This document shows positions 24,655 to 60,207 of a stretch of DNA of 64,000 nt, one piece after another; position 1 is the first letter of the stretch, and each line of letters begins with the position of its first letter. The translations under genes were made by a program, and so were the position numbers. The notes beneath the pieces are model-generated. The model was not told where the DNA came from and searched no databases. It saw nothing but the letters and a program-made list of their open reading frames with translations. Source of the stretch: Monocercomonoides exilis PA203 (lineage: Eukaryota > Protista > Preaxostyla); assembly GCA_001643675.2 (NCBI GenBank), contig LSRY02000032.1, forward strand, positions 248,001 to 312,000. Reading direction: 5' to 3'.

Positions 24655-25439
24655 ATATCGTAATGGAAATAGCGAATTTTCAATCTCATCTTTTGAATAA
24701 CAAAAGACGAGAATTTTTTTCCAAACAATTTTTTTGTTTCTTTTGTAATATTAAGATAAACATCAATTTCTAATATGAAAATGATTTTTTTTCTTTTCGA
24801 ATTTACAAAAAACAAAAATATTATTCTAAAAATTTATTTTTATGAAAATTCATAATAATTCAAATATTGGAAAACAAAGTGGGTCATTCTTTTTGAAAAG
24901 TCGCTGTGGATCAAAAATTTGTCCCATGAAAGTTATTTCAAAAACACTCCGTTTCCATTATTCAAATGATTATAACGAATTTTCACAGTGATGTTTGTTG
25001 GTTCATAACAAACTTCTTTTTGATAAGAAATACGTTTTCATAAAAAATTATATATCAGATTTTTTGATCAAAATTATAATATCAGTTTTTCAATGAAATA
25101 GTGTTTCGCTTGATTGAACCACTTTGCGATTGCTAATAAATACAATAAGCAAGACATGTATCGATTATTTTTCCTGATAAACTTGATTTTCAATGTTAAT
25201 TCGACTTTTCATTTGAATAGAATTTTTCATTTGCATTATGCACATAAACTTGACATAAATGCAAAAACTGAACACACATATTCGATGCATCTGAAATTAT
25301 GATAAATTTAGTGCTTTTCATTTTATTTTAACAAATATATTTTTTTTATTAATTTATTATTCAATCATGTTTTTTGAATTGAATAGTCAACAGTTGATAG
25401 CCAACAATTGTCTTTTCTATAACAACACAAATAAAGATC

Positions 25440-26100
25440 AGAATTTGGGAGCAATATCAGGATGTTGAAGTGTAAGTTCAGAGAATGGAGGATCGATGAT
25501 GCTGTGTATTGGGAATGAAAATGAAGTGAAAGTGAAAGGTGGATCTTTTGATGGGTGCTATTGCTCTGCATCCGATGGTCTTGGAGGAGGAATCTTTCTT
25601 AGATTGCTGAGTGAAAATCCCAATTTTCTGATTTCTTCTTCCTTTGGCACAAACACTGCTAAATGGGGAAGGGACATCTTCGTCATTTTACCCAATCTGG
25701 AAGAAACTGCAAAATCAGAGAAAATCACATGTGTGACAGCCTCTTTGGATTCTTTTGACAAGGTTCGAGGATATGACAATGGAAACAACAGTGTGGCCAT
25801 TCCTCTGTGCATCTATCTCCTCCCCACTCCAGAAGAAATTCATGTGAGCAACACCGAGGCATCTGACCATTCTCATTGTGGAATTGTCCAATTCACTTGT
25901 TTGACAATGAAGCATTCCATCAAACGTCAAACTGGAACAAAGAAAGTTGTTGTGAATGGAATGATTTTGATGAGCAATGAATTGGAATTTGCTGGATAGA
26001 AGCATGAAATCCGAGGAAATGATGAAATCAGTGGATGGACGGTCTCTGTTTCAAGTTCAACAATCAATTCAGCAATGATAACAACAAGAATTTAAACGGA
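25440..26100 (+). pseudogene. Captured ectodomain fragment of the surface-receptor family
   Basis: FDGC.CSASDGLGGGIFL..FGTNTAKWGRDIFV...IPLCIYL..IHVSN..SDHSHCG..F.CLT, the same repeat unit as in the receptor genes; in-frame TAG at 25997. Confidence 0.8.
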
Positions 26101-26299
26101 ATAATCAAAACTCATCTTCTTTCTTTCATCTTCCCTTCCTCTTCACTCCATTTTCAATGTCTCTTCATCATCATCTCTTCTTCCTCCTCATCCTGCTTCT
26201 CTTCTTCTTCTATTCCAAACACAAAAATATGCACATTGATCTGATAGCGAAACTTCAATACACTTGCATCCCTTTCACCATTGTTATCTCATGCATTTG

Positions 26300-29200
26300 C
26301 ACCACAGCACCGTCCCACATGCAGCCTACAGTATCAAAACCACAAGTTCAGATACACTTTTCTCCTTTAACTACCATATAATCATCATCAAGTCCATATC
26401 TTCTTTTAACAGATTCTTCGACTCCAGAAACTCAAGCAGCACTTCTTTCTCCGCATCCTGCGACATATATCCCCTGTCTCTCCACTCTACCACCTGCACC
26501 CTCCCTTCTGCTTTCACCCCACCATGAGCCCTCACTCTCAGCTGCAACACACATTCGACTATAGAATCATCAAATGCACTGGATATAGAACAAACACTTT
26601 TCTCAGCAAGAAGTGTAACGCCCAAGACTACGGAAGAGTGCCATCATGCCTCAGTGCAATACTTTATGCACTTTTCGCACTGCCACTTTGCAGCGTGATC
26701 GATTCTGGCGCTTGCATCAGCACCTCTGCGGACCTCTGCGAAGCTGTCGTTCTCATCATCACCACATCACATGCATACGTCCACACCTCATGCATCTTCT
26801 CTTACTCCACGTACTTCATCGCCTTCCGCCCTTCCTTATTCACCTCCCACTCTTCGCTCACAACATACAAAAACTCCTGCACAACCTAATGCTTTATCTC
26901 CACTCGTTTCCCCAAGCCATTCAACACCAGCCCTTGTTTCCTCTCTTTCCTATTCCTTCCTCTTCCTCTTCCTCTTCTTCTTCTTCTTCTGTTTCTTCTT
27001 CTTCATCATCATCATCTTCTTCATTTTCTTCTGTTTCTTCTTCTTCTTCTTCTCGTTGTCATTCATTTTATTCTTCTTCTTTTTCTTCTTTCTCTTCTCA
27101 TTCTCCTTCTTCTCCTCTTCCTCCTCCTTATCCAAATTCATCATCGTCTTTTTCCTCTTCCTCTTCAACATCCAACTTCTCCTCCCACTCTGCCTCTTCC
27201 CATGCTGAAGTGCTTAACAAGACTCAAACTCTTTCTTGTTCTCCATTGAAGCTGATGCAATACATATCCCCAATCAACCCTTCTTCTCTGCCCCGAGTTC
27301 CTTTGCAGCCGTCTTCTGTTCCGACCCGCTGGAATTCGAGTGAGCTTTCGTCGTCTGCATCTGTCAACCGCTTCTCTTCTGCCTCTGCTTCATTCAGCAC
27401 ATCCGAGAAGAGGCCTGTTCAGACACAAACACAGCAGACATTCGATGACGTGAGGCTGGTTGTGCAGACGAGAAAAATACTCCCAACAGCTCAGAATGCA
27501 AACTCTGTTGGTAATGCTTCGAGTAATTCCACTTATTCCTCTCAGACCTCTTCTGCTTCGAATACTCAGCTGCAGTCACCCAGGCAGCCCAATAAGACAC
27601 TAATTCATGTGCCTGCCACTCCCACTCGCATAACAATACAAACAGTTAATGAACCCTCGATCACTCCAACACGAAAAGGAGGAGAAGATATCCAGTTGCA
27701 GTCTGCGAACTCTGCGTTCAGTGTGATATTGACAAACAAGACGAAAGGATCGACAAATCTGACATTTGCAACTCAAACTACTCAAAAGCCACTTGGAAAT
27801 TTAGGGTCTTCTTCCTCCTCCTCCCCTTCTTCTTCCTCTTCTTCTTCTTCTTTTTCTTATTCTCCGACATTAATAGTTTCCGCCTTTGCCTCTGTCTCAG
27901 CCACTGCCCTCATCTTCCCTGCACCCGCCATCACTCAAACAACCACGTCAATAGCGCGCACACACTTATCAACAGCTCACCGCTCTGAGATAAGCACCTC
28001 AAACACTCCATTTTCTACCACTTTTGCGTTAGCCACGCTTCGCTCTTTCTTTGATGACACACCGTCTTCTGTTTTTGTATCACTGTTGGCTCCGACGATT
28101 GTGCTTGGGGGATCTTCAACTGCATCCATTGCATCTTCTTCTTCTTCTTCGTCTTCGTCTTTTTCCCTTTCACCTTTATCTTCCTCTGCTTCTTCTTCCT
28201 TGGGCTCTCTGACTTCTCCAAAATCTCTCGCTTCCTCCTCTTTCTCTGCCCTTCTTTCCTTCTCTCAGTCACATCGCAGCAGATGTCTTCATCCACCTCA
28301 CCTGGCCCTGCACTCACCAGATAATTTCAGCCTTTATCTCAGTCTCAGTTTCAGTTTCAATCTCAATCTCAATCACTGTCTTCCTCGCAGGACACGAACT
28401 CTTTCCTCACACGCACATCCTCAGCCACATCGCAGCAGTCTCTCACACAGGAAAGCTCTCCCTCGCGTCAGTCTCAATTGGCTCATCCAGGAAGCTTCCA
28501 ACAATCTGCTGCTGTTGCAGCCCAAACTGCCTCATCAAACTTGCCAGCTGCAGTCACTTCGTCTGCTATTATCTCCACCACTTCCTCCTCATCTCTTTCA
28601 TCAGCTATGTCTGCGCCTCTTTCCTCTTCCGCAACTTATGCGCCGCAGCTTCTCCTTGTCACATACTCTTTATCTTCACACACCTCGTCGCAGAAGCGCT
28701 TCTTCCGTTCGCCTCCTCGTCTGTCCATATCCACCACTCCTCTTGACGATGTGCCACCTCCGATGCCTTCGTCACATTCGTTGCACAAGTGCTCTTCTTC
28801 TTCGCATCAGGAGATGAGGCGGTCGATGGAGGTGCACAAACACTGTAAGGCCAATGATACAAGCACATCGATGAGCAACTTGTCAGAACACACGCATTTG
28901 ATATACTGTTCAAAGCAGGTGCTTCCAGAGATGTATGCGTTGAGGCTGATGAAGAGGGAGAAGAAGAGGAATGTGACAGATGAGATATTTGAGATGAAGA
29001 GGATGATGAGAAGAAGGAATAGACACTCAAAAAAAAAATAGAAATTGACGAAGAAAAGAAGTGGAAGAAGAAACAAAATTGTGATGCAGATCCTCTGCTG
29101 CCATCTTCAATACCATGGGAGCATCCATCGGAACAACCACTGAGAAAGCGTCGTCAGTTAGAAATGGCGTACGAAGCATCATAGCCGCGTAAACCCATCG

Positions 29201-31300
29201 TCTGTACAGCATTCGACTGTCTTCTCTAAATAAACTCCTCTTCTGTCCCAAGCCTCTTGTCTGACGTGTTGAATGAACCCGCCTCCCCTCCTTCTGCACC
29301 TCAGCCTCCATTCACTCACCCTGCCAAATCAGCTGTTTATCCGCATCAGACGCCCCATCAAACACACACTCAAACGCATGCACTGACAGTGTCGCTGAAC
29401 AATTGCTCAGAATCTCCTTCGCTTTTCCTGCTCCAGCTCCTTCTCTGCTCTGCCGTGAAGCTTCAATTCTTTTCTCCGTTGTGAACTTCACCTTCGCTGA
29501 ATCATCTGTTCTCCATCACAACAGTCGCTGTCACTCCACAGCACAGCAGCCGCGGCTTCATCTCAATGTGCGCATTCGCATGGCGGATCAGCTCATCTTG
29601 GTTATAAAAATACCACAAGCTGGCTCGTGCTCCTCTGCTTTGTACATGAAACGTTCGACAAGCGCACAAAACTTGTCTGCCAAGTCTTCTACAATCGTGT
29701 GCTTCATCCATGCCACCCCACTGTTACATATAGGACCAGAATCTCGCACAGCTCCAGAAACGACTGCTTCTTCGGTGTTGTGCTTCTGCTGTTTTTCCGT
29801 TCGTTGATTCTCGACGCTGCACGACTTCTTGGCTGCAGCATCTTCAGCTCGTCCAGCATCGTCACCGACTGCCCATCTGCAATGCACCGCTTCATTATCC
29901 AAGCGCTCCCCTTTCGCATCGGCACACAGATCATCAGCCCGCCACCAGATTAAACAGCAACGAGTTTTCAGCTCTTCTGCCTTCGCTCGACCTCTCCTCC
30001 CCTTTTCTTTTCTTCTTCTTCTTCCTTTCGTCGTCCTCTTCTTTTTTTTTCAACAAAACAAACAACTTTCTTCCCCAGCTTCCTCATCGGATTTGTCTTG
30101 TTTCTCATTCATCTCCAAACCATTTTTCGACATTTCCACCTGTACCTCATCTTTCTTAACTCCATCTGAAGTAATGCCCAAAGACCCATCTGCTGCTTCT
30201 TCTTCAACTCTCCTATTCCCTTTTTAAATGCCATTGGACGGAGAAGAACTGCACACTTCTGGTTCAACTGAATGCTGCTTGTCTGCACCCACCTCAGCAT
30301 CAGCCTTCACAAACCTCAGCCCACTCAGCCCAAGCGCCTCTACAACCAGCGGCACAATCGCTTCTTCCAGCTTCCCCTGGTTCTCTTTTATTCTCTCCAC
30401 AAACTCTCTGTGCGCTGTCAAATACCCGCCTTTCTCCTCATTCCCATCACCTCCCTCTCTCCCTCCATCTTCTTTTCCCTCTTTTTCTCCATCTTCTTCT
30501 CCCTCTTTGCCTCCCTCCTTGCCTCCCCTTTCTCCTTCCTCCGCCTCTTCTCGCTCCTCCAGCACAGCCTGCACAATCGCTGCATGAGATTGAACAATAT
30601 CCTCCATCCTCAGCTCCGCAGCATCCAGCCCTTTCTCCACAATCTCCCCCACTTCACACACTGCAACCTCTCACCCCATCACTTCGTCGTCCAGCTTCAC
30701 CATTAATTACACTTCTCCAACGGAAGCAGCAACTTGTCTAACAGATCGCAGATCGAAGGGAATGCATTCACATCTACCGCCGCAAAGATCCGCTTGCTCC
30801 CAGACTTTGTACCCGTCGACGCTGCAAGCAACGGAAGCGTCCCCACCAGCGGAACCGAAATCATCTCCGAAAGCACCACATAATAGATGCACATGCACAA
30901 CACCCCCATTCATCTCCGCAAGCCGCGCCACAACATATCACCGCAGCGTCTACAGCGCCCGAGGCGATAGCAGCAGCTGCAGCGACAGCGGCATGTGCCT
31001 CCCATACACTCCAGCCTCCTCAGGCACCACAATCTGCAGCCGACTCTCGAAGTCGTCCATCGCTGCTGCAGAAGTGTATGAAGCCATCACCGCCAAGGCA
31101 TCCGAAGGGTCAATCGCAAGCTCCGATAATGATGGCTACTCATTCTCTGAAGATTTTTTCTCTTCGCTTCTCCGCCTACTGAATGGAGAAGAAGACAAAG
31201 AAAACAAAAAGTAATGAGAGAAGATATGACTGCTGTGCTGCCCCGGACACAAGAAGGTTGATGAGAAATTTCCCATCACGTCAGCCAGAAGTTACACCAG
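26300..31300 (-). pseudogene. Degenerate acidic/low-complexity protein gene of unknown family inside the cargo element
   Basis: Broken minus-strand ORFs (30703-30909, 30224-30661, 29588-29902, 29027-29311, 26371-26625) with Glu-rich coding bias; several have homologues at 56300-59560. Confidence 0.55.
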
Positions 31301-32675
31301 AAGCACATGCAATATCTTCATTCTTATCAGAATTGTTTACTAGCAAAGAAAACACGATTTTTTATGGAATTTCAAATGTTTGAAGAAGGATATTTTTCCA
31401 TTATTTGTCAATATTAAATGAAAGGGATAAGGAAAAGGCACATACTGAGAAGTTTGAAACTTGTTGAAACAGATTGTTTGAATTAAAATATTTGAAGAGA
31501 CTGAATTTTTGTGTTTATCAAAAACGGAGATTTATTGAAAAAATTATATATCAAACTTCAATTCTTTATAATAACATAAATAATTGTCTATGTTAACAAC
31601 TTTTTGAATAACTTTCGATTGTTACGAGTGAAGTTTTGATGAATTTTTCATGTTTGATAATTTCTAATAAAAAAATTTAAGAATTCAAGCAAATTAATTT
31701 TGTTTGGTTCACAACAAAAGAAAATAATAAAAACTTAGATAGCATCCATAAATTCATAACGAATATTCGAACTTATGAAATGAAATTGAAGAAATAAAAA
31801 CTTATCTAACATTTGATTCAAATAGCTCGTAAGCAATAGCAAACAAAAGAAAATTCTATTTTATAATAAACGTTCGATATGTTATCATCAGACTTATGAA
31901 ATGTTTTTCTATGATAAGATGAAAAAACTGACAATATAAAATATTTGTCAATAAATGATGGGAACGGAATGATCACAATTTTTTGATCATTTTTGATCTG
32001 ATTTTCAGATCAGTTAAACGGTTGCGACTTTTCAAAAAGAATGACCCAAGTGTTCTGAAGAGATAAAAAATAACGAGAATTTAATCCACAAAGCACAAAC
32101 TATTCTTTCAACAAAGCAAAAAGAAATTTTTTTCGAAATCGAATTAATAAAATTCAAAATTGAATTACACTCAAGCTCGGTAATTATCGCAATCCATTTT
32201 GCTCGATTTTTTGTGATTATAAATTAACTTGGCAAAAACCAAACCATCTTTTTCATAAAAAAATTTATTTTTGATTAAAAATATGAACTCACAATTACTA
32301 TGAAAATCCACACATTTGCATCGATTTTTCAATTTATTATGTTTTAATGAAATTTATTGTTAACAATTGTGAAGAAAATAACAACTTTCTTTTTTCCAAA
32401 TATTTCAAAATTGATTGTTAAGTACCCATAATTTTTTTTTATTATTCACGAATTTTGTGCGATTAAAACTTATGAAATTACACATTAAAAATGCCAAATT
32501 TTTTGATGCACGAAAAAATATGATTATAAGCAGTCTTGATTACAATAGAAATGATTAATACAGAGCTTCATTGTATTTATTTTCGAATTCGAACTATTTT
32601 TTGTGAATTTTGCATATTCAATTGTGAAGTTTTTGGAAGTCCAACGTATTAATTAAAATATGAAGTTTCGTATTA

Positions 32676-33125
32676 CAGTCATAACCGGATATTATCACCT
32701 CAAATGTAGTCACATTCGTTTTTAGTCACATTTTCGTGTGTAAGCATATTTTTTGCTTATTTATCATTCATTTCCCATCTCATCTAATCACAGGGCTAGA
32801 TGTGTAAAATCACATTTTATTTCAATATGGTCTGTTTTTTCATTGAAAAATCGACTATATGAACAAAAATCTCAATTTTTTGATTTTTAAAAACACTGTT
32901 TAAATAAGTCAAAATAATGTGTATTTATGAAAAAAATTGTTCAAGCAAGTGAAAAAAGTGTATTTGTGTAGAATTTCCATAAATAAAAAAATCGACCCAA
33001 AATTAATTATTTCAAAAATTAAAATTTATTTTTTTCTGTGTAAAGCATCATCGTGTATAATCACAATCGGATATAGTCACAAAAAGTTGTGCAAAACCCA
33101 ATGTGTTTATATCCGGTTTTTACTG
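32676..33125. mobile_element. 450-bp pogo/Tc1-like MITE
   Basis: ta|cagtcataaccggatattatcac ... gtgtttatatccggtttttactg|tt; 23-bp imperfect CAGT-terminal TIRs, TA TSD on the left only. Confidence 0.7.
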
Positions 33126-34364
33126 TTTTTAAAAAATGAAGTGTCAAGCTGTACAATAAAGTTAAACTTTGTGAGAGGGTTTTGATATTTTATAGAAATA
33201 AGAGTATTTTTGCAATATCCATCCTGTAATTCAAAAGGAACTTTTCAAATATATTTGGAAATCGTTATTCAGGGTTTTGTCAAAACGGAAAACTTATGTA
33301 TAATTGGCTCAATTTGAGTAATGAATGGCAAAACTGTAGTTTATTTACCGTTCAGTGCAATTTTTGAATGAATAGTTAATAGAATAGGATAATAATTCAT
33401 CACATTCTTTTTCTCTTTAATTGAAGATCGAAACCATTCAGTTCTTTTTAACATTTCATCTGAATAATAAAAAAATAAGTTGTCAGACTCTTTCAGCGAG
33501 AGAATTTAATTTGCAAAAATGAATTTGATTTTTCATTTTAAAAAAAAACAGCTATCATAAAAAAAAAAAACTGTTTTTTTTTCATTGATTTATCCCATCG
33601 AACAACAAGCATCGCTTCAATTCTCTTTGTCTAAAAGGCATTTTTTCTATATTTTCACACTACAATAATGAAAACATCATGTTTCAATTTTGTTATTGAT
33701 AGAAAAACATTAAAATAATGACAATTTTTTTCCTTTTGTTTATTTTAAATGTTTATTCATATTATTATATGGTAAGATGTAACATATTGGGTCCCGATTT
33801 TTACTGTGAATTATAATCAATATTTCACCAAATTTGACACATTTGAATATCATCATTCATCGAATGATAATTTTTGTTTTGAAAATTTTTGATTTTCATT
33901 GAAAAATCCTATTTGAACGTAATTTTTTTAATCATTATCACTCAATATGTGGGACAGATCCATTCAAAAAATTTTCTGGATAATGAAAAGAAAACTTTAA
34001 AGATGATGAAATATCTACAGATTCTGTTCACAAGAATAAATTAATATTTGATTTTTTGATTAAAGTTAAATAAAGAAGAAAATACGTTGGAGAATGAAGA
34101 AAAATTTTTATGTATCTATAAATATTTAAAAACTCTGGTTTAATTTTTGGTCATGAAACTATAATTCACAACTAATTTGTTAGTCGTTGAAACATAATAA
34201 CACATTTATTAATCGAATTTTCAACAATGAAGTATATTATAGAAATAATTCAAAATGATTTCTATGAAAATTTTCGGATCCAATAAGTTAGACTTTACCA
34301 TTTTATATATTAATATCATATTTGATCAATCAAATTTAAAGGAAATGATTTGTTTAATCATGAA

Positions 34365-37300
34365 TAGATACAATGAGAATAGAAAGGCTTTATTCGAATA
34401 AAAATAACTTATTCAAATAAACAAAGTTTATTCGGTATAAATTATTTTTATTCGAATAAAAAAAATTAATTGGTATAAACTCCGGTTTTTTGGTATAACT
34501 TTTTTCGAAAAAAATTTTTTGTGGTATTCAAAAATATTCACTTGAATCACATTTTTAAAAAGCACCTAAAAATTAATTTCTTTTTATTTTATTTATTTTG
34601 GAAAAGTAATTTTATCTTCAAGATTTTGTTTAAATGAATTGTGATCAAAATACATTGAATTGTTTTTGTTAAATGAACAATGATAAAACTTTTTCTTTTA
34701 TTCACCAATGATATAAGCAATCAAAATAACTTGCAATTAGCTGCAAATAAAAATTCATTATTTCACAATGTTTTTTATTCTTTTTTTGTTTATTTTTCTA
34801 TCTGTATTTCACATTTATGATCAAATAGAAAAAAATACATCCAATTGCAAAAGGAGAAGTTATTGAATGAACTTCATTTGGCTGAAATTGTTCCAGATTC
34901 CTGATTATGCACACTATTCTCCCTTCTGCTTGAAACACTATCAATTACAGATGATGATGTTCCAGTTGTTTTTGAGTCATTCCATTTGCACGGAGAGAAG
35001 AAATTTTACTGATCGTCTGCAATCTTCCGTTTCCTTAACTTTTGCAGATACCTTTCACTTTTATTGACTACAGCACTTCGAGAGCGATAGAACCCAATGA
35101 ACGAATTGTTAGAGGAGGAAAATGAAGGAATGGACGATAAAGAAGAAGAGCTTATGTTGAATGTGCAGAGGGACTTCTGTGTGAATGAAGAGGAGTGGGT
35201 GGAAACGGGCGAAAGTGCGAGGGACTTCATTGGAGTTCCAACAAGAACAGAAGAGGCAGACAACTGGGTGTGGTGGAAGGGAGAAAAAACGGGACAATTT
35301 AGTAGGAGGCTGTGGTGCTTTGAGTGTGCAGCTGGGCAGATGAGAGTGTGCTGTTGAACGAGTAAAATGTCTGCTGTTGTTCATCTTCATCATCACCTCC
35401 TTCTACCCTTCCCCTTTCCCTCCTCCTTCTTTCTGTTGCTGCACGTGCGAGTCTTGTGTCGAAAGCATCAATTTGCGATGTGCAAAACTCGTCTTTCTCA
35501 TTCGTCTTAGTCTTTACATTTGGCTCTTCCTGCTGTCTCCCTTTCCTCTGCTCGGAGCTCAATTGGCTTCTGAAATCCACCTTCTTTGCCTCTTCCATTT
35601 GAACTCGTACTCCTCTCTCTTCGCTTCTTGGCAGAGAAATAAACGGATAGGATGAGTGCGATGTGCCTGGCAGCTCCTTCCTCTTCCCATTTTCATTCTT
35701 CGCTCAAATCACATTCACCACATTTAGCACAACCTGCGTACGGAAGCCGTCGAAGTATTGAAGAAGAGCGAAATGCTCCTCTGGGGAAGAGGAAAGCAGT
35801 TCAGAAGCACATCCAGTTATTCCACAGAAGGCTTTGACATCGATGAAAATACTGTTAAGAGTAGATAAACTGAATGAATTGATTTTTGGAGGGTATTATC
35901 AAGCTATTGATAAAACAGCTTTTGTACATTTGAGGTTCGTTGATTTGACCAATGTTAAGTCAACAAAAATGACATTGAAGAAATTGAAATGGAGCTGAAG
36001 AAGAAAATAGCCACAAAGTTGAAGATGTCACAGTTGGTGGGAAATGAAAAGACGAAGAAGAAATCAAAGACATGGAAGAAGATGAAGAAGCAGCAGATGA
36101 AAAAGAAGAAAGAGAAAAAGAGGAAGAGGTTGAAAAAGGAGAAGGAGAAGAAGGAGAAGAAGGAGAAGATGACGAAGAAGAATAAGGTGAGGAGGTGGGT
36201 GAGGAACAGTGTAATTTCAAAGGCAACAGAGAAATCTGTGGGGATTGAGTAAAACCAGATTTTCCATCTTTGGCTGCTGAAAGAAGTGTCCGTCTTGTCC
36301 TGTCCACGAAATCTGAGCGATTCTAAACATATAGCAGAAAATGAGAGAATGCTGCACAAATGAGAAAAATGGTAGATTGGAGATGAACATAAAAGCTGAG
36401 CTCGATTGCTGCATGTATCCTGCTGTTTCCAGAGTGATTCCGCAAACATATTTTGCGATGGACTTCTGATAGAGTTGTGATCGATCCCCACATGCCCCGC
36501 CTCCAGTTTACCAGAAGATATGCAAAACAGCGTTGTTGGAGACGAAGGAAGCGAACTCATCCCAATCGCACTCACCGTCTTCCCTTTCCCAACAACAGAA
36601 ATCTCCTTTTCCCCAACACTTATTGTCGCCCCTTCACTCACATGCCTCCCACCCAGCACTGTGATTGTCGAGCTCAGTTGAGCCATGCTCGACCCCACTG
36701 CATGCCCCACTGTCTTGCAAGGTGCTAACTCACTCATCCCACACAGATTGTTTGCGTCATTCCCACTCACCCCAACATATCGATCCTTCATCCCTTCCTT
36801 CAACCATTCCTTCTTTTCTGTATATTGATAACCATTATTATAACAGCACACTCTCGTATCATTGCAATTCGTTGTATATGATTCGTAGAATGGATTGTTG
36901 GATGAAAAAAGTTTATTTCCATCAGAAAAATACACATCATGACCAAATGGAGTTGAGTTAGTGCATCTGTAATCGTGGAAGAAGAAGAAATAACAATAAA
37001 TGTTGTAACTCAGAGCTATTTGTTGGTATGGATTAAAATACAATCCTCCTCCCCAAGCTACTGCATGACTTGAAATAAACTGAACGCTCCTCATAAAAAT
37101 TTTCAGGAATCGTTACACAATACATCCCTCCACCATATGAATTTGTTACTGAGCATGAAGTGAAACTACTGTCAAAAACACATGCACTCTCCCCTTTGCC
37201 ATTTTCTTCTCCAATATTGATTTCAGATTTTGATATTTCTCGAGAGGGAAAGCTTTTTCATAATCTGCTTTGAATGTTTGATTTTCTCTCAAATCTGTGA

Positions 37301-37790
37301 ATATATTCTTTGAATAATTATCTGATTTCTTTTCATTTCCTCCTTAATAATTTCTTCTTCTTTCATCGAGTTAAAATTCACCCTATTTTTAGCATATCAA
37401 CATGCCATATTCAAATCTTCAAAAACATAAAATTTGCAATTCGTTATGAATCTGTGATTTCATTCGATCTCAAATGCTGTTATTCAGGACAATATATTAA
37501 CATTTTTTTATTTGTGACCATAACTGCTAGATAAAATTTTTCAGAATTGAATTTCCATGAATATATATTGTTTATATATCATTTTGTGTTCATGTTTTTC
37601 AGCACATTCGAATTGATGAAAAGGATCATAAAAATTTTTGTAGAGGGATTAATTGGAATAAACTTGGTCTTTCTGGAATAAATTTTTTTAATTCGAATGA
37701 ACTGGTGTTTTCTGGAATAAACTTTGGTTATTCAAATTATTATTTTTATTTCAATAAAATTTACTTATTCCAATATTATCTAATACCATC
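34365..37790. mobile_element. Possible ~3.4-kb long-TIR cargo element
   Basis: ~100-bp imperfect inverted repeats built of ttattcgaataaa-like units at ~34388-34480 and ~37660-37765 bracket gene fragments. TSD not identified and boundaries approximate. Confidence 0.5.
36380..37250 (-). pseudogene. Ectodomain fragment of the surface-receptor family
   Basis: WGGGLY..YCYFFFF..GHDVYF...RYVGVSGNDANNLCG.SE.APCKTVG..TISVGEKEISVVGKGKT aligns by eye with RYVSTSGSDNESMCGKSESDACLTIG..TIEVGDKRVEIRGKGRT of the 39886 gene. Frameshifted at its 5' end and fused to unrelated low-complexity sequence. Confidence 0.8.
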
Positions 37791-48012: not shown

Positions 48013-49163
48013 AACAGGTTGATTTTGTAATTGCACATTTCTGGAATGACACAGTGTTTTCAAAAAGACAAAAGAATAGCATGTGCATTTATTTCAATGA
48101 TTCAACGAATAATTGATAAGATTAACCATGACGAAGTTGCTTTTCAATAAGATTGAAATCATTTTGATCATATTGAAAGAATGGGTTTTAGACAATGTGT
48201 TACATCAAAAATCAGAAAGTTCTCCATGATTGTTAGCAAAAGTGGTATTATTCCCCAATTGTTGAAAAGATATGATCACTTCTTGTTGAATATGTTCCTC
48301 ATTTTGTTTGCTCGGTGAAAATGGCATTTGTTTGCTTTTTGCCAATGAAACATCAGATATATGCAGGCTTTGCTCAAGCTCGTGTTCAAAATACAAATTC
48401 TCAAAAGTTCTGTTGTTTTCGATACACATTCCAAAACTGCTTGTCTTGATTTCTCAAGGGTGTCAAAATAAAAATTGGCATTTCTTGCTCAGTCACTTCA
48501 CATTAAACTCAATTCCAACAAAATAATAATCGAAGTTCTCAATGTTTTCAAAGGTTTTTTTTTTTTATTTAAAATAATGCTTCTTCCGTCTGTTCAACAG
48601 TCCAGATTCTTGAATGAAAATTCAATTTGTCGAAGAAAAACGTGAGTTGTTGAATAACTGAAAAGAAAATGAACTACAAGAACAAGAAAGTGCACCAAAA
48701 AGCATATTTGCAAGTGCATAACATCTCAACACCCAAAGCAGGTTGACACAAAACAACAAGAAATTGCATTGTCTGCGGTTGTATGCTAACGCTGCTTTGG
48801 TTCTGAGGCATCAGCGTTCAAGCAAGCTGAAAGAAATCATCGTACTTCGGAACCTAGATACTCACAAATGTCAAACTGCATTGCAAGCTTTGAAGAGAAA
48901 ATTGATAAACAGAAATGAAATAAAAAGGAAAGGAAAGGAGAGGAAAGATTTTTGAAACTCGTTAACAACATATTTTGTTTGGTGAATTTTCTGAATGAAG
49001 TAAAGACACATCGTTCACTAAATCCATGGCTAAACGATGTAATTCACAAAAAACAAGACAAAATGCGCTTGTAGCAACTGGAATAAAATGAATATGAGTT
49101 TATCAACTTACACCAGATTGTTTCTGTAAGACTCCAAGTTCATTGCAAGGTTGTAATAAATAG

Positions 49164-50161
49164 GGTGATTTATAAACCCGAACATTTTCATAAACCAGGT
49201 TATTTTTTTTGTTCATTGAAACAGAATAAACACAACATGAAAATATAAAAAGCAAACATTTACACGTTTATTTTTCTATTTTACGACAGAATTAAAATTT
49301 TTTTGTTTCAATTTTTGTTTTTGATGAAGATCAAATGAATTTTCAATTTATTATTGATCATTTGTTTTGCTCATTTTTAACCAACTCTCTTTCTTTGTTT
49401 ATTTTCAATTGCAATGTCATAAAACATTCATAACGAAGTTTTGTTATTCGAAATGTTTTATCTTTTCATCTATTTTTTCTATTGTTTTTCTCGTTTCATC
49501 ATTTTTGACAAAAAATATGAAAATATGAAAATTCTGAGCTGCACAATATTTTTTCTATATTTTAAGTGATGCGCATGAAAAGAAAAATATGTGCACAAAG
49601 CATTTACCATGTTAGAATTTTGTGAAATGTTGTTGCTCAAAAAATACACGTCAATTTTTGAAAATGATAAACATGCTTGTTTCATATTAAACAAAACTTA
49701 AAATGACTAATTATTAAGAATACCAATGCATTATTATCTTATTTATACGTTATTGTTTCAAATAAATCTTGATATCAAATAAAAGCATAGATATTTTCAT
49801 ATTTTCATATTTTTTGTCAAAAATGATGAAACGAGAAAAACAATAGAAAAAATAGATGAAAAGATAAAACATTTCGAATAACAAAACTTCGTTATGAATG
49901 TTTTATGACATTGCAATTGAAAATAAACAAAGAAAGAGAGTTGGTTAAAAATGAGCAAAACAAATGATCAATAATAAATTGAAAATTCATTTGATCTTCA
50001 TCAAAAACAAAAATTGAAACAAAAAAATTTTAATTCTGTCGTAAAATAGAAAAATAAACGTGTAAATGTTTGCTTTTTATATTTTCATGTTGTGTTTATT
50101 CTGTTTCAATGAACAAAAAAAATAACCTGGTTTATGAAAATGTTCGGGTTTATAAATCACC
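49164..50161. repeat. Inverted repeat with 369-bp arms and a 260-bp spacer (foldback element)
   Basis: 49164-49532 is the reverse complement of 49793-50161, with no mismatches seen by eye; termini ggtgatttataaa. Confidence 0.93.
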
Positions 50162-51074
50162 ATATTCAAATAAGACTTGCTGCTTTTGTTTGTCAACATT
50201 TATAGGGCTATGATTTTATCTTGATCTTTTTTCTTTGTCAAAACCTTATTCTTTTTTGTCATGCTTTTAGCTTTGCACAAGCCTGTTGGGGGAAAAAAAT
50301 AATAAGAAACTTTTGTAATATATTGATTTCCTTATATTGTATTTTTTTCCAATATTTCATGTGTAATAAAAAGATCGAGGATGATAATAATTTTATGTTT
50401 TGATCATCGACTTGATCCTTTTCCAGCAAATATTAGTTATCAGAAGTTTAAAGCTTCAATATCATTATGCAACATTTCTTTTTTATATGATTTAGTTGTT
50501 TTAAACTTTCTCAACTTGTTTTTTTAACATTTTTTCTCATTTCACACATTTTCCAAAAAAAGCATGATTTCCAAAATAAATGAACTTTTGTTTAGAAATT
50601 CTTTGAAACAAAATAAAAATAAATTTGTAATGAAATGATATCTCAAAGAAAAAACAACTAAACATTTGTCTATGACGAACAATTTTCAGATCATAATTTT
50701 CACGTGACATCACATTTCGCTTCAAATTCTTATTCAATTCTTTTTCATTTCAGAATTAAACAAAAATAAAAAATAAAAAACATATAGTTTTAATTTTCTA
50801 TATGCTTCTATTTAACATAAAATTAAATTGATATGTTAAAGTATGTTTTTTTTTTAACAAAAACAGTGAAATGAGAAAAAAAGGTCAAAAATTAAATTGA
50901 AAAAGTTAAAAACAAGTTAAAATGATAATATAGGAATGTCGAATTGTGATGCTGTGGCTTTTAACGTTTAGTATAAAATATTCGCTTCATGGCCAGTAAG
51001 TCTTTGATCTGAGTACTAAAATAAAAAAAAATAATAACAATTTATGTGAACAAAAAATTTTCTAAATACGAAAT

Positions 51075-51529: not shown

Positions 51530-51581
51530 CACAGAAAGTTGTAAATTATTATGATAAAATTACTTATTTATTTGACTAAAT

Positions 51582-54500
51582 TAAGCCTCTGCGACACAAA
51601 AAATAAAAGTCCAATTTGTCGGTCGAGCAGACAAGCTTGTGTCGAAAAGTTATTTTAAGTGAAAAAATTCATTTTTTTAATTAAATAGCATTTTTCACAT
51701 TTTCAACGAATTTATCAATGTAAAATTTACTGTTTATTGTTATTAAATGCACAATCAAAAATTGTTTCGCTAAATGAAAAATATTTTGTGATATTTGAAA
51801 AAGAATATTTAATTATTTGTTTCGATCAATTTGAAAACTGATTTCCTTGATGTTATTTTATTTCCATTAACAATTATTTATTCTTACGGGAAAGACATTT
51901 GAAACTTTTCACATCTCTATTACTTGCAATTTAGACATCAAAGGAATTTATTCAAATTCGCATTATATTATTAACTGGTTTGATTTTACACAGCCTTGCA
52001 CAAATGATGACTATTTCTTTAAATTTGAAATATGAATTGAGCAATGTTTTAAAAAATAGAGCAAATGGACACAACAAAAAACCAATCGTTTTCAATGCAC
52101 GAATATGTTGATTGCACAGCTCCACAAGCAGGTGCTCCTAATGTGCATGACAATGAAAATTCAACCATCACTTTCGAAAATCAGTCATTTTCAATATGCA
52201 ATACTTCGACAAGAAGTGGAACAATATATGCTGAAAATCGCTGTGCATTGATCTTCATTCTTCATTCATCAGATGTGCTGTGGCAGCTTTTTATTGAGGG
52301 GTCGGATGAATTGCAGCACAGAATATCCCCTTTCAATCAATAATAGATGGACAGTTTCAAAGAAATTGCTCATCGAAAAATGACGGAAAGGCAGACGAAC
52401 TCCTTCAAACAATAACTCAAAGGCAAAAACATGTTTCATTAATTCGCATTTCGATAAATGTCGATGCAATTGAACAGTTGATGAGGCAGGGGGAGCATTT
52501 CAACGTTGAAATCCAATTGGCAAAGTTATTATATCAAACTGTATATTCTGCGGTTGCTATTCAATGTGCGGAGGAGGTGCGGTAAGCAAATAAATGCATT
52601 CAAACAATTTGGAAGTTTTGTTTAATTACTGTTTTTTCCATAATAATATTGCTTAAAAGACGGACATAATATTTTTTCGCATAAATTAGCATAAAACAGC
52701 AATGATCAAAGTTGTTATTCAATTAGGGAAACTGAAACCATAATCAGTTTGGATTATTCAATAGTCGTGGGTAAAAGAAAATACTTAAAAACGATTTTGG
52801 AATAATAAAATTAGTTTCTTCAGCAGATTCTAAACCCAAAGGAATAGACGCATGTACATGTGGGCTTGATTAAAGCTCCATGCTGCACCATCAGCCATTG
52901 TTTGACTCCTCTTATTCCTAATTAATTGACTGATATCGAGATATTCTCACGAAAAATTACAGAGACAAAAGCGCGGGCTGTGGCAACTCGTCCTTCACGA
53001 CATACGGCCCAAGCGATTTGACAACAACAATCCAAACAAAATTTGAAAAATCAGGCATATCTCTATCTTCCTTCTCAACAGGCACATTAACTGTTTGCGA
53101 TCTAGTTGTTGTGATCAACTCGTCGAATGAAAATAATCGTGGATCAAAGATTTTTTGAGATTATGGGAGCAGGAAAGCTGAGGATAAGCCCGCTGAACAT
53201 ATCTGCTGGAAGTGAACAAACGAAGAATGCAACTTGACCAAGGCTTTTTGTGATTTTCAAAAAATTAATTCGAAATTTCATGAATGAATCAAGTAATTTC
53301 TATTGGGAAAAGAAAGAAGTTGAAGCATCCATATAGAAACGAGCTGAGCCAGATGTCTGCTGATGATACACTCTCTTCATACCTACCACCTGGTGCGGCG
53401 ATGCAGATTCGTGTGCTCCACATGTATAGCCCTGGGACAGAGCAGAGGCAGAAAGCGCAGAATCAGAGAACGGAGCACGCACATGCAAAGCATCAGTGCT
53501 TGCACGGAGCGAAAGGAGGCAGTTTGCTAACGTTCCTCCAATGTTTAAAAGAAGAAAACTTTACATCCACAAGAACAAGATGAATACACTTGCTACTCCC
53601 ACTCGTCCACAAGCGCACAATACATAACTATAAACACTCCAATCATCCCTTTCGCTTGGCACACTCGTACGATAACACAAGTCGCATTCCGCAGATCAAT
53701 TAACGGTACACTTTCCTCCGGCACAACTGCCCCAATCGCAACAAACTCGTCCATCGTCTCTCTCTGCCTGTTCGAGTTCAAATGCGACAATGCCCCTCCG
53801 ATACCAAACATCCACCCCCACCCCCGCCCCATTCTCTTCTCCTCTCTCTCCTCCCATACATCCTCTCCCCGACAAACGTTATGTTCATCATCTTATCCTG
53901 CAGAAGTCATCCCTACCGCAACAGACTTCTTCACAATCCTCCAACTCCATACGCAGTTCTTCCAGCTCCACCGACATAATCATAACTTCCAAAAAGTCCT
54001 TGAAGGTAACGTTTAAGTTCCGATTTTCTAGTGGCTCATAACTTGGATTCAATAAAATTGTTGGAAATATTCTCAACATCTTTCACTTGTTTCTTTAATT
54101 TTGTACCAACAATAATACTCTTTTCTTCCTTTCATCAAAACACACATTTTTAAATAAAAGCCATGTTATCAATTTTTTCTCCGTGTTCATATTGCAACTT
54201 TGTTTATTTTCATATGATGTGCAAGAAATTATTAAAGATCTCGTGAGCACTTCAACTGATAGCGAAATAAAATCGATAGACAAATAATCAAATTCCATTT
54301 GAGTAAATTAATTTTTCGAAGAAATTAATGACATGTTTTGTAAAAAAAAATGAAAATGAACTCAAATACACTTACTCATCTCATGCAAGAAGAAAAGCAA
54401 CAATTTTGTGTTGCTAAAAAAAAGGTTTAAAAGAAGCAAAATATTTTTTTGAAAATTTTGTTGGATCAAATAGAGAGTTTTGCGGATTTGAAGATGAGAT

Positions 54501-54892
54501 TAGATATTGAAGTTTTTAATGCCTCAATATCAAAAAGGAATTGGCAATCAAACAAAAATTGCCATTTTTTCTTTTTTCTGCAATTCGACTGATCTTTGTC
54601 AAACGACTGATCTTTGTCGTTCGACTGATCTCGACAAAGATCAGTCGATAACCCATAAAAAAAATAAGAATTTTTGAAAAAAAAGGGGAATTTTTGATTT
54701 ATCAAATTTATATAAATTTATTAATATTAATCGGCAAAAAAAAATAAAGATTAAAATTCTATTTCGTTTTTTTCTGAAAAAATATGAAAATAAAAATTAA
54801 TACTTTTTTTATAACTTACAAATTAAACTCATATGAATTGTCGGTCGACTTGTCGAGTTGTCCAAAAAATGTCGGTCGGTCGCAGAGGCTTA
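51582..54892. mobile_element. 3.3-kb non-autonomous hAT-like element with cargo (14-bp TIR TAAGCCTCTGCGAC, 8-bp TSD GACTAAAT)
   Basis: gactaaat|taagcctctgcgac ... gtcgcagaggctta|gactaaat; subterminal GTCGGTCG and cgactgatctttgtc repeats; no transposase seen. Confidence 0.92.
52065..52700 (+). pseudogene. Decayed N-terminal ectodomain fragment of the surface-receptor family inside the hAT-like element
   Basis: TFENQSFSICN...GTIYAEN; EAGGAF...VIISNCIFCGC...GGGAV...NYCFFHNN; several stops. Confidence 0.6.
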
Positions 54893-55429
54893 GACTAAAT
54901 CTTTTTGAAAAGTGACATCAGATCGAAAATTTGACCCATCGTCATTAAATAATTTTCTTTCCGTTTCCATTATTCTCATAAAAAACGAAAAAATTCACTA
55001 TAATGCTTATCAGTACATTGCAAACTTCTTTATGGAAAGAAAAATCAAAATCAAAAAAGTATACATCTGATTTATTGATCAAAATCAAAATATATGTTTT
55101 TCAAAGAAAAAGGGTTTCACTTGATTGAACTTCTTTGCAATTATTTACAAATGAAATGTCCAAGGTGTGTTTTGATTCTATTTCGTGATAAACTTGATTT
55201 TCAATGTAAATTCTAATTTTCATTTGAATAGAATTTTTCATTTGCATTATGCACATGAACTTAACATAAATGCGAAAATTGAACACACACATTCGATGCA
55301 TCTGAAAATTTGAAAAATTTAGTGGTTTGTATTTTATTTTAACAAAAATATTTTAATTACTTTTTTTTATTCAATCATGCTTTTTGATTGAAAAGTTCGC
55401 AGTTGATAGTTAACATTTGTCTCTTAAAT

Positions 55430-56130
55430 GGCATATAAGATAAAGATCTTAATTCTTGTTCATTTACAGTATGTGCAAGCACAACATCGGCTGATGGGGG
55501 ATCGATGATGCTGTGTGTAGGGAATGGAAATAAGGAAAAAGTGAAAGGCGGGACCTTTGATGGCTGCTTTTGCTCAGCATCCAATGGTCTTGGGGGAGGA
55601 ATTCTTCTTCGATTATTGACTGATGATCCCAATTTCCTGATTTTTTCTTCCTTTGACACAAACACAGCCAAGTGGAGCTGTGATATCTTTGCCATTTCAT
55701 CCAATCTGGAAGAAACAGCAAAATAAGAAAACATCGCATGTGTGACAGATTCTTTGGATTCTCTTGAGAAGGTGAGGGGATATGACAATGGAAATACAAC
55801 TTTGGCTATCCCTCTGTGCATTTATCTCCTTCCCACACCAGAAGAAATATATGTGAGTAACGCTGAGTCATATGATCATTCACATTGCGGAATTGCTCAA
55901 TTCCCTTGTTTGACCTTGAAGCACTCACTCACACATCAAACAGAAGAAAAGAAAGTTGTTGTCAGTGGAATGATACAGATGAGCAATGAATTGGAATTTG
56001 CTGGATAGAAGCATAGCATCCGTGAAAACGATGAAGTCAGCTGCTGGGCCATTTCCGATGCCAGCTCGTCATTAAGCTCTGCAATGATAACAGCAAGCGC
56101 TGAAACAGTTTTGTCAAAACTGATCTTCTT
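55430..56130 (+). pseudogene. Captured receptor ectodomain fragment (copy 2)
   Basis: GGSMMLC..FDGCFCSASNGLGGGILL...IPLCIYLLPTPEEIYVSN..DHSHCG..FPCLT; stops at 55724 and 56006. Confidence 0.8.
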
Positions 56131-58067
56131 TCTTTCATCTTCTTTTTCTTCTTCTTCTTTTTCTTCTCCTTCTTCTTCTTCCTCATCCTGTTCCTTTTCT
56201 CCTTCTTCGCCATCCGACCGCAAGAAAATCATTGCTCGCTCTCTCAGAACATCTGCCTCCATCACACTCACAAACAGCACTGTTATTGTGTCCTTGTTCC
56301 AATTCAAAGAATTACACTTTTTTCAGATTATCTCAATCATTATCTCCACACTAGCCTGTCACACACAAACGTCTGTTAACCTTTCTGCAAACACAGCTGC
56401 CACAAAATAATTAGCTTGTTTAATCGCATATACAGTCTCCAAAAAAACAACTCTCATACACTCAAATGCATCGCTGCCCGCTTTATTTCTTTGACACCCA
56501 AACAGATACAGCGTATAAACCAGGAAGAAATGGTGTTGCTCACTCAGAGCATAAAGAAAAAACGCCAAGCGTTGACATTTGTGCTCTCGGTATTTATTCG
56601 TTAACTCGACTTGCCGGAACTTCGCAACTTGTGTCATCTCTTCCTCATTTCCGCAAAGAGCAGCAGAAGCAGTTGCATTAGCAGCAGCAGCAGAAGAAGA
56701 AGATGATGATGATGATGAAGAAACAAAGTTGTATTGCACATCCTCTGCTGCCATCTTCAATACCATGGGAGCATCCATCGGAACAACCGCTGAGAATGCG
56801 TGGTCTGTTAGAAATGGCGTACGAAGCATCATAGCCGCGTAAACCCATCGTCTGTACAGCATTCGACTGTCTTTTCTAAATAAACTCCTCTTCTGTCCCA
56901 AGCCTCTTGTCTGACGTGTTGAATGAACCCGCCTCCCCTCCTTCTGCACCTCAGCCTCCATTCACTCACCCTGCCAAATCAGCTGTTTATCCGCATCAGA
57001 CACCTCATCAAACACACACTCAAACGCATGCACTGACAGTGTCGCTGAACAATTGCTCAGAATCTCCTTCGCATTTCCTGCTTCTCCTCCTTCACTGCTC
57101 TGCCGTGCAGCTTCAATTCCCTTCTCAGATGTGAATTTCACCTTCTCCAAATCATCTCTCCTCCATCACAACAGGCACTTTCACTCTACTTCACAGTAAC
57201 CATTGCTTCATCACAATTTGCACATCCGCAAGGCGGTTCAGCTCATCCTTGCTGATAAAGATACCACACTCAAACTCGTTCTCCTCTGCTTTGTGCTCAA
57301 ACTATTCAACAAAGGCGTTAAGCATAACCACAAAGTCTTCCACAATAGCCTGCTTCTTCACTGCTTCTCTCTCTGTCCCATGCTCAATGAGGATCTCGCA
57401 CTGCTCCAAAGTCAGATTCCTCTTCAACTTTGTTTCTCAGCTGTATCTACGCCATTTCATCTGAATCTTTGCACAGCTTATGGTTAGCAGCATGCACAGC
57501 TCTCCCAGCGCATCCAAAGTCTGCCCGTCTGCAATGCGCACAAGCATCATTTGCTGGTTGCCTTTAAAGTTAAAGGCACTTCTCGTAATCCTTCAACCTA
57601 ATAGAACAACCACAACATCCCGCTCTTCTATCTGCACTCCCTTTTCCCTTCCTCTTCCTCCTCTTCCTCTTTTTTTTCTTCTTCTAAAAAAACCAACAAA
57701 ATCAATTGCAACTTCAGCAAATTCAGCAAATTCAGCAATTTCAACAGCATAATCAACAAAGTCAATTGCAAAACCAACAAAACCAACAAAGTCAACAAAA
57801 TCAACTAAACCCACTGCAAAACCAACAACAATTTCAAACATTTCAATCATTTTAGTCACAATTCCCCTACCAGTATCAACTTCAGCACTTGCAACAGCTA
57901 CAAAACTGGCTTGGTAATACTTCTCCTTCTTTGCTTCCTTCTTCTTTTTCTTCTTCCTCTTCCTCTTCTTCTTCTTCTCTATCTTCTTCTTCATTTTCTT
58001 CTCCTTCCTCCTCCTTCACTTCTTCTTCTTCTTCTCTTGTTCCTCCTCTTCCTCTCTATCATCATCT

Positions 58068-58265
58068 TCTTCCTCCTCTTCCTCCTCTTCCTCCTCTTCC
58101 TCCTCTTCCTCCTCTTCCTCCTCTTCCTCCTCTTCCTCCTCTTCCTCCTCTTCCTCCTCTTCCTCCTCTTCCTCCTCTTCCTCCTCTTCCTCCTCTTCCT
58201 CCTCTTCCTCCTCTTCCTCCTCTTCCTCCTCTTCCTCCTCTTCCTCCTCTTCCTCCTCTTCCTCC
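58068..58265 (+). repeat. 9-bp tandem repeat (CTTCCTCCT)~22, poly-Glu on the minus strand
   Basis: Perfect array; no array of this kind at the corresponding position in copy 1. Confidence 0.95.
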
Positions 58266-60207
58266 TTTTCATCATCTTCATCCTTTTCATCCCTTTCCTC
58301 CTCCTCTTCCTTCTCAATATCAATCGAACTTCTCTCTCTCCCTGATTCCTCATTCATCCTCAAATCATTCGTTGGCATTTCCACCTTTTTGATATCTTTC
58401 CCCACTCCCTCTGAACTTCTATCTGAACTTATGCCCAAAGATCCATCTGCTGCTTCTTCTTCTGCTCTTGATATCTCCTGTTGGATACCATCAGATGGAG
58501 AAGAACTGCACACTTTTGGTTCCACTGAATGCTGCTTGTCTGCGCCAGCCTCAACCTCTGCCTTCACAAACCTCAGCCCACTCAGCCCAAGCGCCTCCAC
58601 AATCAACGGCGCCATCGCTTCTTCCAGCTTCCCCTGATTCTCTTTGGTTCTCTCCACAAACTCTCTGTGCGCTGTTGGATCCCCGCCTTTCTCCTCATTC
58701 CCATCACCTCCCTCTCTCCCTCCATCTTCTTTTCCCTTTTCTTCTCCCTTTTTGTCTCCCCTTTCTTCTTCCTCTGCCACTTCCCGCTCCTCTAGCACAG
58801 ACAGCGCAATCGCTGTTGGAGACAGAACCACATCCTCCATCATTAACCCCTCCGCCTCCAGCCCCTTCTCCACAATCCCCCCCACTTCACACACTGCAAT
58901 CCCTCGCCCCATCACTTCATCGTCCAGCTTCACCACCAAATTTTTCAACTGCAGCGATCGCGAAGCCAGCAGCAATGTTATGAACAGATCGTATTCACAT
59001 CTGCTGCTACAAACATTCGCTTGCCCCCCTTCTTCGTGCCCACAAACGCTGCAAGCAAAGGAAGCTACCCCACCAGCTGAACCGAAATCATCGATGAAAG
59101 CGCCACATCGTATGAACACACAACACCCCCATTCAGCACCGCCCGCCGAGCCACACCGTATTCCCGAAGCGTCTGCAGCGCCCGCAGCGACAGCAGCAGC
59201 TGCAGCGACAGCGGCATGTGCAGCCCATACACCCCAGCCGCCTCTGGCACCACAATCCGCAGCCGCCTCTCGATATCATCCATCGCTCCGGTCGATGTGT
59301 ATGACTCTGCCACAGCCGACGCATCCGAAGGGTCAATCGCAGGCGCTGATGAAGATGATGGCTGATCATCTCCTGCTGCCTTCTTCTCGTCGCTTTTCCG
59401 CCTCCGGAATGGTGAAGTTGATCGGCGTGCTGCTCCAGTTGAAGAAGACGAAGAAGACGAAGGCGCTGAGCGACGAGACGACTGCTGCGCTGCATCGGCC
59501 ACAAGAGGCTTTTTTCGATACCACTCTATGTCAATTGGCAGTTCAGCATGTGACACAAGCACAACATTTTCATTTGTTTCAGAACGGTTAACAGCAGATA
59601 AAACCTGCTTTTTTTGTGTAATTAAAAATGTTTGAAGCAGGATTTCTTTTGATAATGCGTTAATATAAAATGAAAGGGAGAAGAAAAAGGCACATTCTGA
59701 GAAGAAAGAACCAGTTGAAATAAACTGTTTGAATCTAAATTTGAGAATAATTTGTTTTTTTGAGTTTGGAGCGAATGGTGATATATTTTGAAAAATAATA
59801 ATTTATACCACAATTTTCGAGAATTGCATTAAAAATTGCTTTATGCAAACAACTTTTTGAATACATTCGATTGTTACGAGTGAAGTTTTGATGAATTTTT
59901 CATGATTGATAATTTCTTATTAAAAAATTCTAGAATTCAAGAAAATCAATTTTATTTGTTTTTCTTCATAAGAAAGTGATTAAAACTTAATTAATGTCAA
60001 TAAATTCAGAATGAATATTCTAATATATGAAATGAAAAAGAAGAAATAAGAATATGTAAATCATTTGATTCAAATAGCTGAAAATCATTTTCTTTCAAAT
60101 GAGTATTACAAAATAAGTTTACAGTTCATATGATATCAACAAAATTGTTTCTTATTTTTCAATAATAAGCTCAGAAAATAATATATATATATATATATAT
60201 ATTATAT

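Follow-up and report, generated by a model that had tools for sequence, protein, structure and literature searches.

A 64,000-nucleotide stretch of the genome of the oxymonad protist Monocercomonoides exilis PA203 (contig LSRY02000032.1, positions 248,001 to 312,000; hereafter, the window) very probably hosts members of three non-autonomous families of cut-and-paste DNA transposons, whose interiors are transduplicated pieces of host genes. We refer to these families as A, B and C, and to elements of this kind as Pack-type elements. Each of the three carries a piece of the giant beta-helix receptor/TKL-pseudokinase family, the surface receptors that make up the largest gene family of this protist, in agreement with a preliminary description of the window, which had claimed such cargo for several transposon families. 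A and B are delimited by terminal inverted repeats (TIRs) and target-site duplications (TSDs) and recur at many loci, while C is recognized by its TIRs and copies. Genes of the parental type are present elsewhere in the genome, in the form of more than 100 giant receptor open reading frames (ORFs) and one 1,553-amino acid IQCH-like ORF.

Element A1 is a 7.2-kb non-autonomous TIR transposon on the forward strand (24881-32047). Its TIRs are perfect over 24 nt (24881-24904 and 32024-32047) and start with GGGTCATTC, and the 4-bp TSD AAGT lies on both sides (24877-24880 and 32048-32051), as had been proposed for a GGG-ended element in this position. We searched for further copies in the M. exilis assembly (82.3 Mb, 101 contigs). 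The first 520 nt of A1 match at least 41 loci, many of them aligned from base 1, and the whole 7.2 kb returned five full-length colinear copies at 87-91% identity and about 15 further colinear copies at 67-83% identity. When up to two mismatches were allowed, the 24-mer end was found 434 times in forward and 423 times in reverse orientation, as compared with no occurrence of the reversed control. These approximately 857 ends and at least 20 colinear copies confirm that the TIRs recur throughout the genome. Since ATAT flanks the majority of the A copies, the TSD of the family is 4 bp long with a preference for ATAT, and the AAGT that flanks A1 sets the start of the element at GGG. A miniature inverted-repeat transposable element (MITE) of 240 bp, flanked by ATAT and with a TIR identical to that of A, lies just upstream of A1 (24415-24654).

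The length of the TSD, taken by itself, would possibly assign A to the Sola superfamily. Sola DNA transposons produce 4-bp target duplications, and so does A (AAGT here, mostly ATAT elsewhere). However, Sola elements encode a DDD transposase, and no transposase of this type was seen in A or linked to it at the loci that we examined; Pfam has no Sola model (PMC5751038). Within A1, a low-complexity stretch of GAA type with acidic and basic residues (26900-28300, reverse strand) is variable or missing among the copies. Two other elements with A-type ends contain an unbroken GAA/GAG-type trinucleotide repeat of 1.9-2.5 kb (L032:1435-3993 and L036:1433-3399), which is open in all six frames and constitutes a much enlarged form of the acidic stretch of A1.

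Element B is a 3.3-kb hAT-like non-autonomous element on the forward strand (51582-54892). It shows the short TIRs and the 8-bp TSD of hAT transposons: its ends are inverted over 14 nt (TAAGCCTCTGCGAC), and the octamer GACTAAAT is exactly duplicated at 51574-51581 and 54893-54900. The earlier assignment of this element to a hAT-like family therefore stands. The duplicated octamer belongs to the degenerate left TIR of a second A copy, A2, indicating that A2 was the target of the B insertion and that B is the more recent element. A second copy of B with 98% identity lies on another contig (C17), where its flanks match only imperfectly, and the right end of B is found at at least 15 loci at around 80% identity. 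B resembles non-autonomous, Ds-like hAT elements in its short TIRs, its 8-bp TSD and its young second copy of near-identical sequence, and no transposase was found in it. It differs in that its terminal motif fits the hAT consensus just loosely and in that its interior consists of debris from captured genes and not of a deleted transposase gene.

The interrupted element, A2 (54893 to approximately 60100, forward strand), is an old and internally deleted A copy, with its degenerate left TIR split by B. It aligns with A over 54900-60079 at 75-82% identity and lacks element positions 1331-4184. A second A copy had been suggested at this place, and the alignment supports an old copy; no right end was recognizable. 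A MITE occupies the expected place of this right end (60204-60466). This MITE and a second one of similar length, approximately 263 bp (19783-20046), have ends of the form ATAT|GGGTGATT, which are akin to the A-type ends, yet distinct from them.

Element C is 3.4 kb long (34363-37785, forward strand) and has inverted ends of approximately 100 nt. At least six full-length copies with 74-78% identity share its boundaries, which correspond to 34361-34366 and 37783-37785 in the window. A long-TIR element had been considered possible in this region, at approximately 34365-37790. Its long ends and its copies were recovered, and no target duplication is clearly visible at the window copy. We thus count C as a TIR element on its TIRs and copies.

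All three elements contain pieces of receptor ectodomains that align colinearly with giant receptors (73-78% amino acid identity over 230-249 residues for A, 77-78% for C and 35-60% for B). The receptor-derived region of A1, which we call ORF1 (25412-26155, forward strand), is homologous to residues 742-1001 of receptors of around 2,600 amino acids. It shares 73-74% identity over 245-249 residues with two such ORFs from other loci (residues 742-986 of L039 and 753-1001 of L042), and up to 78% with the best annotated protein. In A1 the ORF itself is shortened by a stop to 167 amino acids (25496-25999), whereas intact copies reach 246 amino acids; in A2 only a broken remnant is left (55445-56134, forward strand; 70-73% amino acid identity to receptor modules). 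For the captured module, 150 scored matches were obtained across the genome, and more than 100 of them lie in open frames of 1,900-3,100 amino acids. Identity within the ~2,600-amino acid subfamily is 65-80% over most of the protein, so that the conservation of the captured module is not exceptional. The receptor piece of C is 231 amino acids long (36400-37094, reverse strand, within the ORF 35955-37094; the receptor match covers 36441-36998) and is similar to giant ORFs of 1.9-4.4 thousand amino acids (77-78% identity over 221 amino acids). These ORFs form a second receptor subfamily, which is located mainly on contig C42. It is free of stops in five of the 11 C-type copies listed. The piece hosted in B (52047-53231, forward strand) is a decayed and frameshifted N-terminal ectodomain corresponding to residues ~277-688 of the ~2,600-amino acid receptors, the subfamily to which the piece of A also belongs. 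It aligns with intact receptors over around 400 residues, again with frameshifts, and only with members of a subfamily other than that of the two receptors of the window, which it does not match.

The cargo had originally been attributed to the family of these two receptors. This is correct at the level of the giant family, but the nearest relatives are found in other subfamilies (73-78% identity for A and C). When used as queries against A, the two window receptors returned only weak matches (25-37% identity, E-values 6e-10 to 3e-9). One of them is an intact gene of 2,714 amino acids with a beta-helix ectodomain, a transmembrane segment and a C-lobe kinase-like tail (39868-48012, forward strand), and it reaches just 25-37% identity with the cargo pieces. 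All of the 114 database relatives of the receptors are M. exilis proteins, most of which contain the PF07714 domain. Kinases form the largest gene family of this species and comprise 332 genes, of which 320 are tyrosine-kinase-like (PMC6759080). Moreover, 46% of the long-read assembly consists of repeats and 35% of the genome is composed of 'unclassified' repeats, which often overlap protein tyrosine kinases (PMC8767320). As estimated from the 332 genes, at about 7.5 kb each, the receptor family occupies roughly 3% of the genome and a higher fraction of the repeat-rich regions.

Receptor ectodomains are present in all three elements, as had been noticed, but the cargo is not restricted to them. 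Both A and B contain IQCH-like pieces. The fragment of A1 (30092-31117, reverse strand) corresponds to residues ~488-837 of the intact 1,553-amino acid ORF (L045), which lies on contig C25 and contains IQ motifs and an ATP-grasp_IQCH domain (E-value 6e-29). The fragment of A2 (58316-59652, reverse strand) covers residues 384-844 at 71-74% identity, and that of B (53342-53961, reverse strand) residues ~966-1119. Overall, more than 160 IQCH-like fragments are detectable in the genome. The composite of receptor and IQCH pieces found in B is present also at other loci, where it is accompanied neither by B ends nor by A-type sequence. A additionally contains a piece of a third family, formed by ORFs of around 2,830 amino acids. 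This piece lies at 56359-56961 in A2 (reverse strand; 44% amino acid identity to part of these ORFs) and has a counterpart near 28810-29311 in A1. On contig C25 the IQCH-like region occurs twice (~2045600-2047500 and ~2069100-2071000; L045 and L046) in inverted orientation and 24 kb apart, with one intact frame of 1,553 amino acids and the other open for 758 amino acids. The pair may have arisen by inverted duplication, or the two regions may be the arms of one element of very large size.

To reconstruct the origin of ORF1, we inferred a protein tree from 20 element-borne pieces and from one module of 69 receptors, sampled from more than 100. Nineteen of the 20 pieces carried by A elements fall into a single clade (Shimodaira-Hasegawa-like approximate likelihood ratio test, SH-aLRT, 97) that is nested well inside the receptor modules, and the twentieth is a decayed copy on a long branch. 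The best identity between element ORFs and receptors is around 78-82%, which is in the same range as that between receptor paralogs. Single origin, nested position and level of identity together indicate that the flow went from receptor to element, that it occurred once and that it was not recent. The tree thus shows that the receptor piece of A was captured once from a receptor of the ~2,600-amino acid subfamily.

We then analyzed further elements that were chosen solely by their paired A-type ends (L029-L037). These elements have in common with A their leftmost 350-500 nt and their rightmost 500 nt, both approximately, while their interiors are different. Three kinds of them (L030/L031, L032/L036 and L034) carry a different receptor piece, residues 1577-1854, placed 505-525 nt from the left end and in the same orientation as ORF1. 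Among the others, L033 is a divergent A, and L029, L035 and L037 have no receptor piece. Four of the five pieces of this second type group in one clade (SH-aLRT 95), and both L030 and L031 contain an ORF of 251 amino acids that starts with ATG. A common repeat phase for the two kinds of A-type cargo was considered and dropped once the ORFs were read. The recurrence of receptor pieces is real, and the three carrier families account for up to four acquisitions. It is not specific to receptors, as IQCH-like pieces recur as well.

The tree of ORF1 strongly conflicts with the tree obtained from the remainder of the element: L010 and L027, for instance, combine near-identical ORF1 sequences with different backbones. 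The groupings of ORF1 were rejected on the right 4 kb, and the groupings of the backbone were rejected on ORF1 (approximately unbiased, AU, test, P-values from 1e-5 to 1e-89). From this conflict, A copies are shown to be recombinant mosaics, in which the left part with ORF1 and the right 4 kb have different genealogies. Mosaicism fits with template switching during gap repair or with ectopic recombination between copies. In the mechanism that we propose, the A, B and C families would be moved in trans by transposases presumably encoded elsewhere, and host pieces would be acquired, and later swapped, through template switching while the excision gap is repaired. The huge family of paralogous receptors may offer many templates for this repair, which would explain both the entry and the swapping of pieces from abundant families.

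The variation within ORF1 follows a codon-aware pattern. In 21 aligned copies, variation shows a three-base periodicity only between element positions ~600 and 1130. Within the ORF1 core, variants private to one copy are evenly distributed over the first, second and third codon positions (64, 63 and 61, respectively), whereas those found in at least two copies accumulate at third positions (87, 74 and 159; P-value 3e-9, chi-squared test). Consistently, the ratio of nonsynonymous to synonymous changes is 171:148 for shared and 137:52 for private variants (odds ratio 0.44, P-value 2e-5, Fisher's test). No comparable signal was found in the other two frames, in other parts of the element or in any of the six frames of the IQCH piece. 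We rejected base composition and CpG content as causes of the third-position excess, since both predict equal counts per codon position. An all-against-all comparison of ORFs between copies was uninformative, because at 70-90% DNA identity every frame seems conserved. Private mutations of ORF1 look neutral, as for dead copies, while the older variation looks codon-aware. Purifying selection may hence have kept the 246-amino acid ORF in the lineages that multiplied (omega of approximately 0.44 relative to private mutations).

An ORF of at least 239 amino acids from ATG is retained in seven of 22 copies. Several copies of ORF1 are annotated as genes of 239-258 amino acids, such as MONOS_1488c2 and MONOS_8388, and genes of this type returned no relatives beyond M. 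exilis within the length range searched. Four runs of RNA libraries, all from one study, contain 72-74% of the sampled A1 words. The contigs of these libraries cover 25541-30998 with zero mismatches, do not cover 25100-25499 and have no splice joints. This is presence in RNA libraries and not a defined transcript; the 246-amino acid ORF is probably expressed.

Several observations weigh against the reading of these elements as Pack-type carriers with an ORF maintained by selection. The first concerns the level of variation itself, because shared third-position variation in ORF1 (159 events over 168 sites) runs at around double the level of the non-coding controls, and first and second positions are at control level. 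This raises the alternative that the codon-aware pattern was imported through repeated gene conversion by functional receptor paralogs, whose differences are for the most part silent. Such an origin could account for the pattern, given that the elements demonstrably swap segments and that over 100 paralogs with 70-80% identity could serve as donors. Nonetheless, the ORF1 pieces form a well-supported single clade that diverse donors would break, and the full ORF is preserved in a third of the copies. The excess over the controls could reflect either silent variation imported from receptor paralogs or gap-rich non-coding alignments, which probably understate neutral divergence and may make the controls read low. 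The single clade argues against conversion from diverse paralogs and not against short tracts from close ones. We regard gene conversion as possible, if rather unlikely.

Other points against the reading concern the ORF and the methods. The 246-amino acid ORF lacks a signal peptide, and it runs from the last part of one beta-helix unit into the first part of the following one, an unusual layout for a functional protein. Prediction of its structure from a 46-row alignment was unusable (mean predicted local distance difference test score, pLDDT, of 32). The RNA evidence consists of assembled contigs that carry no strand information and have no silent-DNA control, and the clades compared by AU testing were defined after inspection of the trees. 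Finally, the ORF lists of A, B and C contained no ORF of transposase size and Pfam scans of the longer ORFs gave no transposase hit, a screening that short exons and Sola-type enzymes may escape. Nine other elements with A-type ends contained no transposase either, and no autonomous partner was identified among them. The only DDE hit, a DDE_Tnp_4 domain on contig C62 (L036:7225-8412, E-value 7e-20), was discarded, as it lies at the right edge of an A-type element and mostly outside it; its ORF belongs to a Harbinger-type neighbor.

A bolder extension of selection on ORF1 is that the element-borne ORFs with receptor modules (246 amino acids in A; open in five of 11 copies in C) are working genes. 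In this case, truncated ectodomain pieces under selection would be multiplied and recombined by transposons and would act, for instance, as soluble competitors or regulators of receptors, or as sources of regulatory RNAs directed at them. We consider this doubtful; if true, the elements would coevolve with the largest gene family of M. exilis.

The preliminary description had gone further and proposed that the elements are a reservoir for receptor diversification, which spreads ectodomain modules and donates them back to receptor genes. This proposal draws on the presence of receptor pieces in three transposon families, on the two different pieces that occupy one position within a single TIR family, on the recombination between elements and on the size of the receptor family, which overlaps the 'unclassified' repeats (PMC8767320). 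However, none of the 69 sampled receptor modules falls inside the element clade, and identity between elements and receptors does not exceed that between paralogs, which excludes recent transfers. Intact receptors with modules near-identical to the cargo, which were expected under this proposal, were not found. Furthermore, the piece in B is frameshifted, and no element TIR adjoins the two giant receptor genes that we examined. A donation of modules back to receptors is thus very unlikely, and a role of the elements in diversifying the receptor repertoire is conjectural and unsupported.

Capture from receptors is preferred also over the opposite direction, in which a receptor-like ORF was ancestral to the elements and receptors acquired the module from transposons. 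The position and orientation of the ORF beside the left end are fixed in several subfamilies and the ORF is open in a third of the copies, as would be expected for an ancestral component. The element clade, however, lies deep among the receptor modules and is not basal. In addition, the piece corresponds colinearly to an internal segment of a 2,600-amino acid protein that is conserved along most of its length, it starts and stops inside structural repeats, and the same elements carry plainly truncated IQCH pieces. All this makes the reverse direction highly improbable. Local segmental duplication of a receptor-rich region, suggested by the two receptor genes and the two A copies, which are arranged in a matching order along the window, has a practically negligible probability, as it is refuted by the genome-wide counts of ends and by dozens of dispersed copies with unrelated flanks on other contigs, and is at odds with exact boundaries marked by TIRs and TSDs and with the insertion of B, with its own 8-bp duplication, inside the end of A2.

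Elements that carry gene fragments are known as Pack-MULEs in rice and other plants, as Pack-TYPE elements, including Pack-CACTA, in Arabidopsis, and as Pack-TIR elements reported in animals. Some of the captured pieces are transcribed and have Ka/Ks below 1. Similarly to these, A, B and C are non-autonomous TIR elements with many copies and with target duplications (clear for A and B), and their interiors consist of fragments of one host gene or more, which in some cases derive from unlinked loci and lie in opposite orientations. Unlike Pack-MULEs, the carriers are not Mutator-like, since A has a 4-bp duplication of ATAT type, B an 8-bp hAT-like duplication and C none that is clearly visible. 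Two further differences are that the same two host sources, receptor and IQCH-like, were found in two unrelated carrier families, A and B, and that the host is an oxymonad protist rather than a plant or an animal.

The genome papers of M. exilis (PMC8767320, PMC6759080) do not describe transposons carrying gene fragments. Our results suggest that part of the 35% 'unclassified' repeat signal (PMC8767320) is due to transposon families that spread pieces of genes, and not to the genes themselves. Several element-borne fragments are presently annotated as genes, and copies of fragments inflate the apparent size of the receptor family. With regard to mechanism, the elements represent a concrete case of Pack-type capture in a protist, with at least three carrier families and a hint of selection on one captured ORF.

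A few other features of the window are worth reporting. An ORF with a reverse-transcriptase domain (21567-22589; RVT_1, E-value 2.5e-14) is probably a retroelement remnant. The region 9282-14330 contains a USP/UCH deubiquitinase gene in several ORFs; the first of these (676 amino acids) occurs just once in the genome, which marks it as a host gene, and we rejected these ORFs as transposase candidates. Two perfect foldbacks, with arms that are 100% complementary, occur at 49159-50166 (374-nt arms, 260-nt spacer) and at 60791-61190 (194-nt arms, 12-nt spacer). Young foldback or MITE-like elements could explain them, as could artifacts of the assembly. The two receptors of the window share 92-96% nucleotide identity in the regions encoding their transmembrane segments and kinase-like tails (4276-5406 and 46522-47661), and only ~37-46% amino acid identity in their ectodomains. 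At their 3' ends this looks like gene conversion or cassette exchange.

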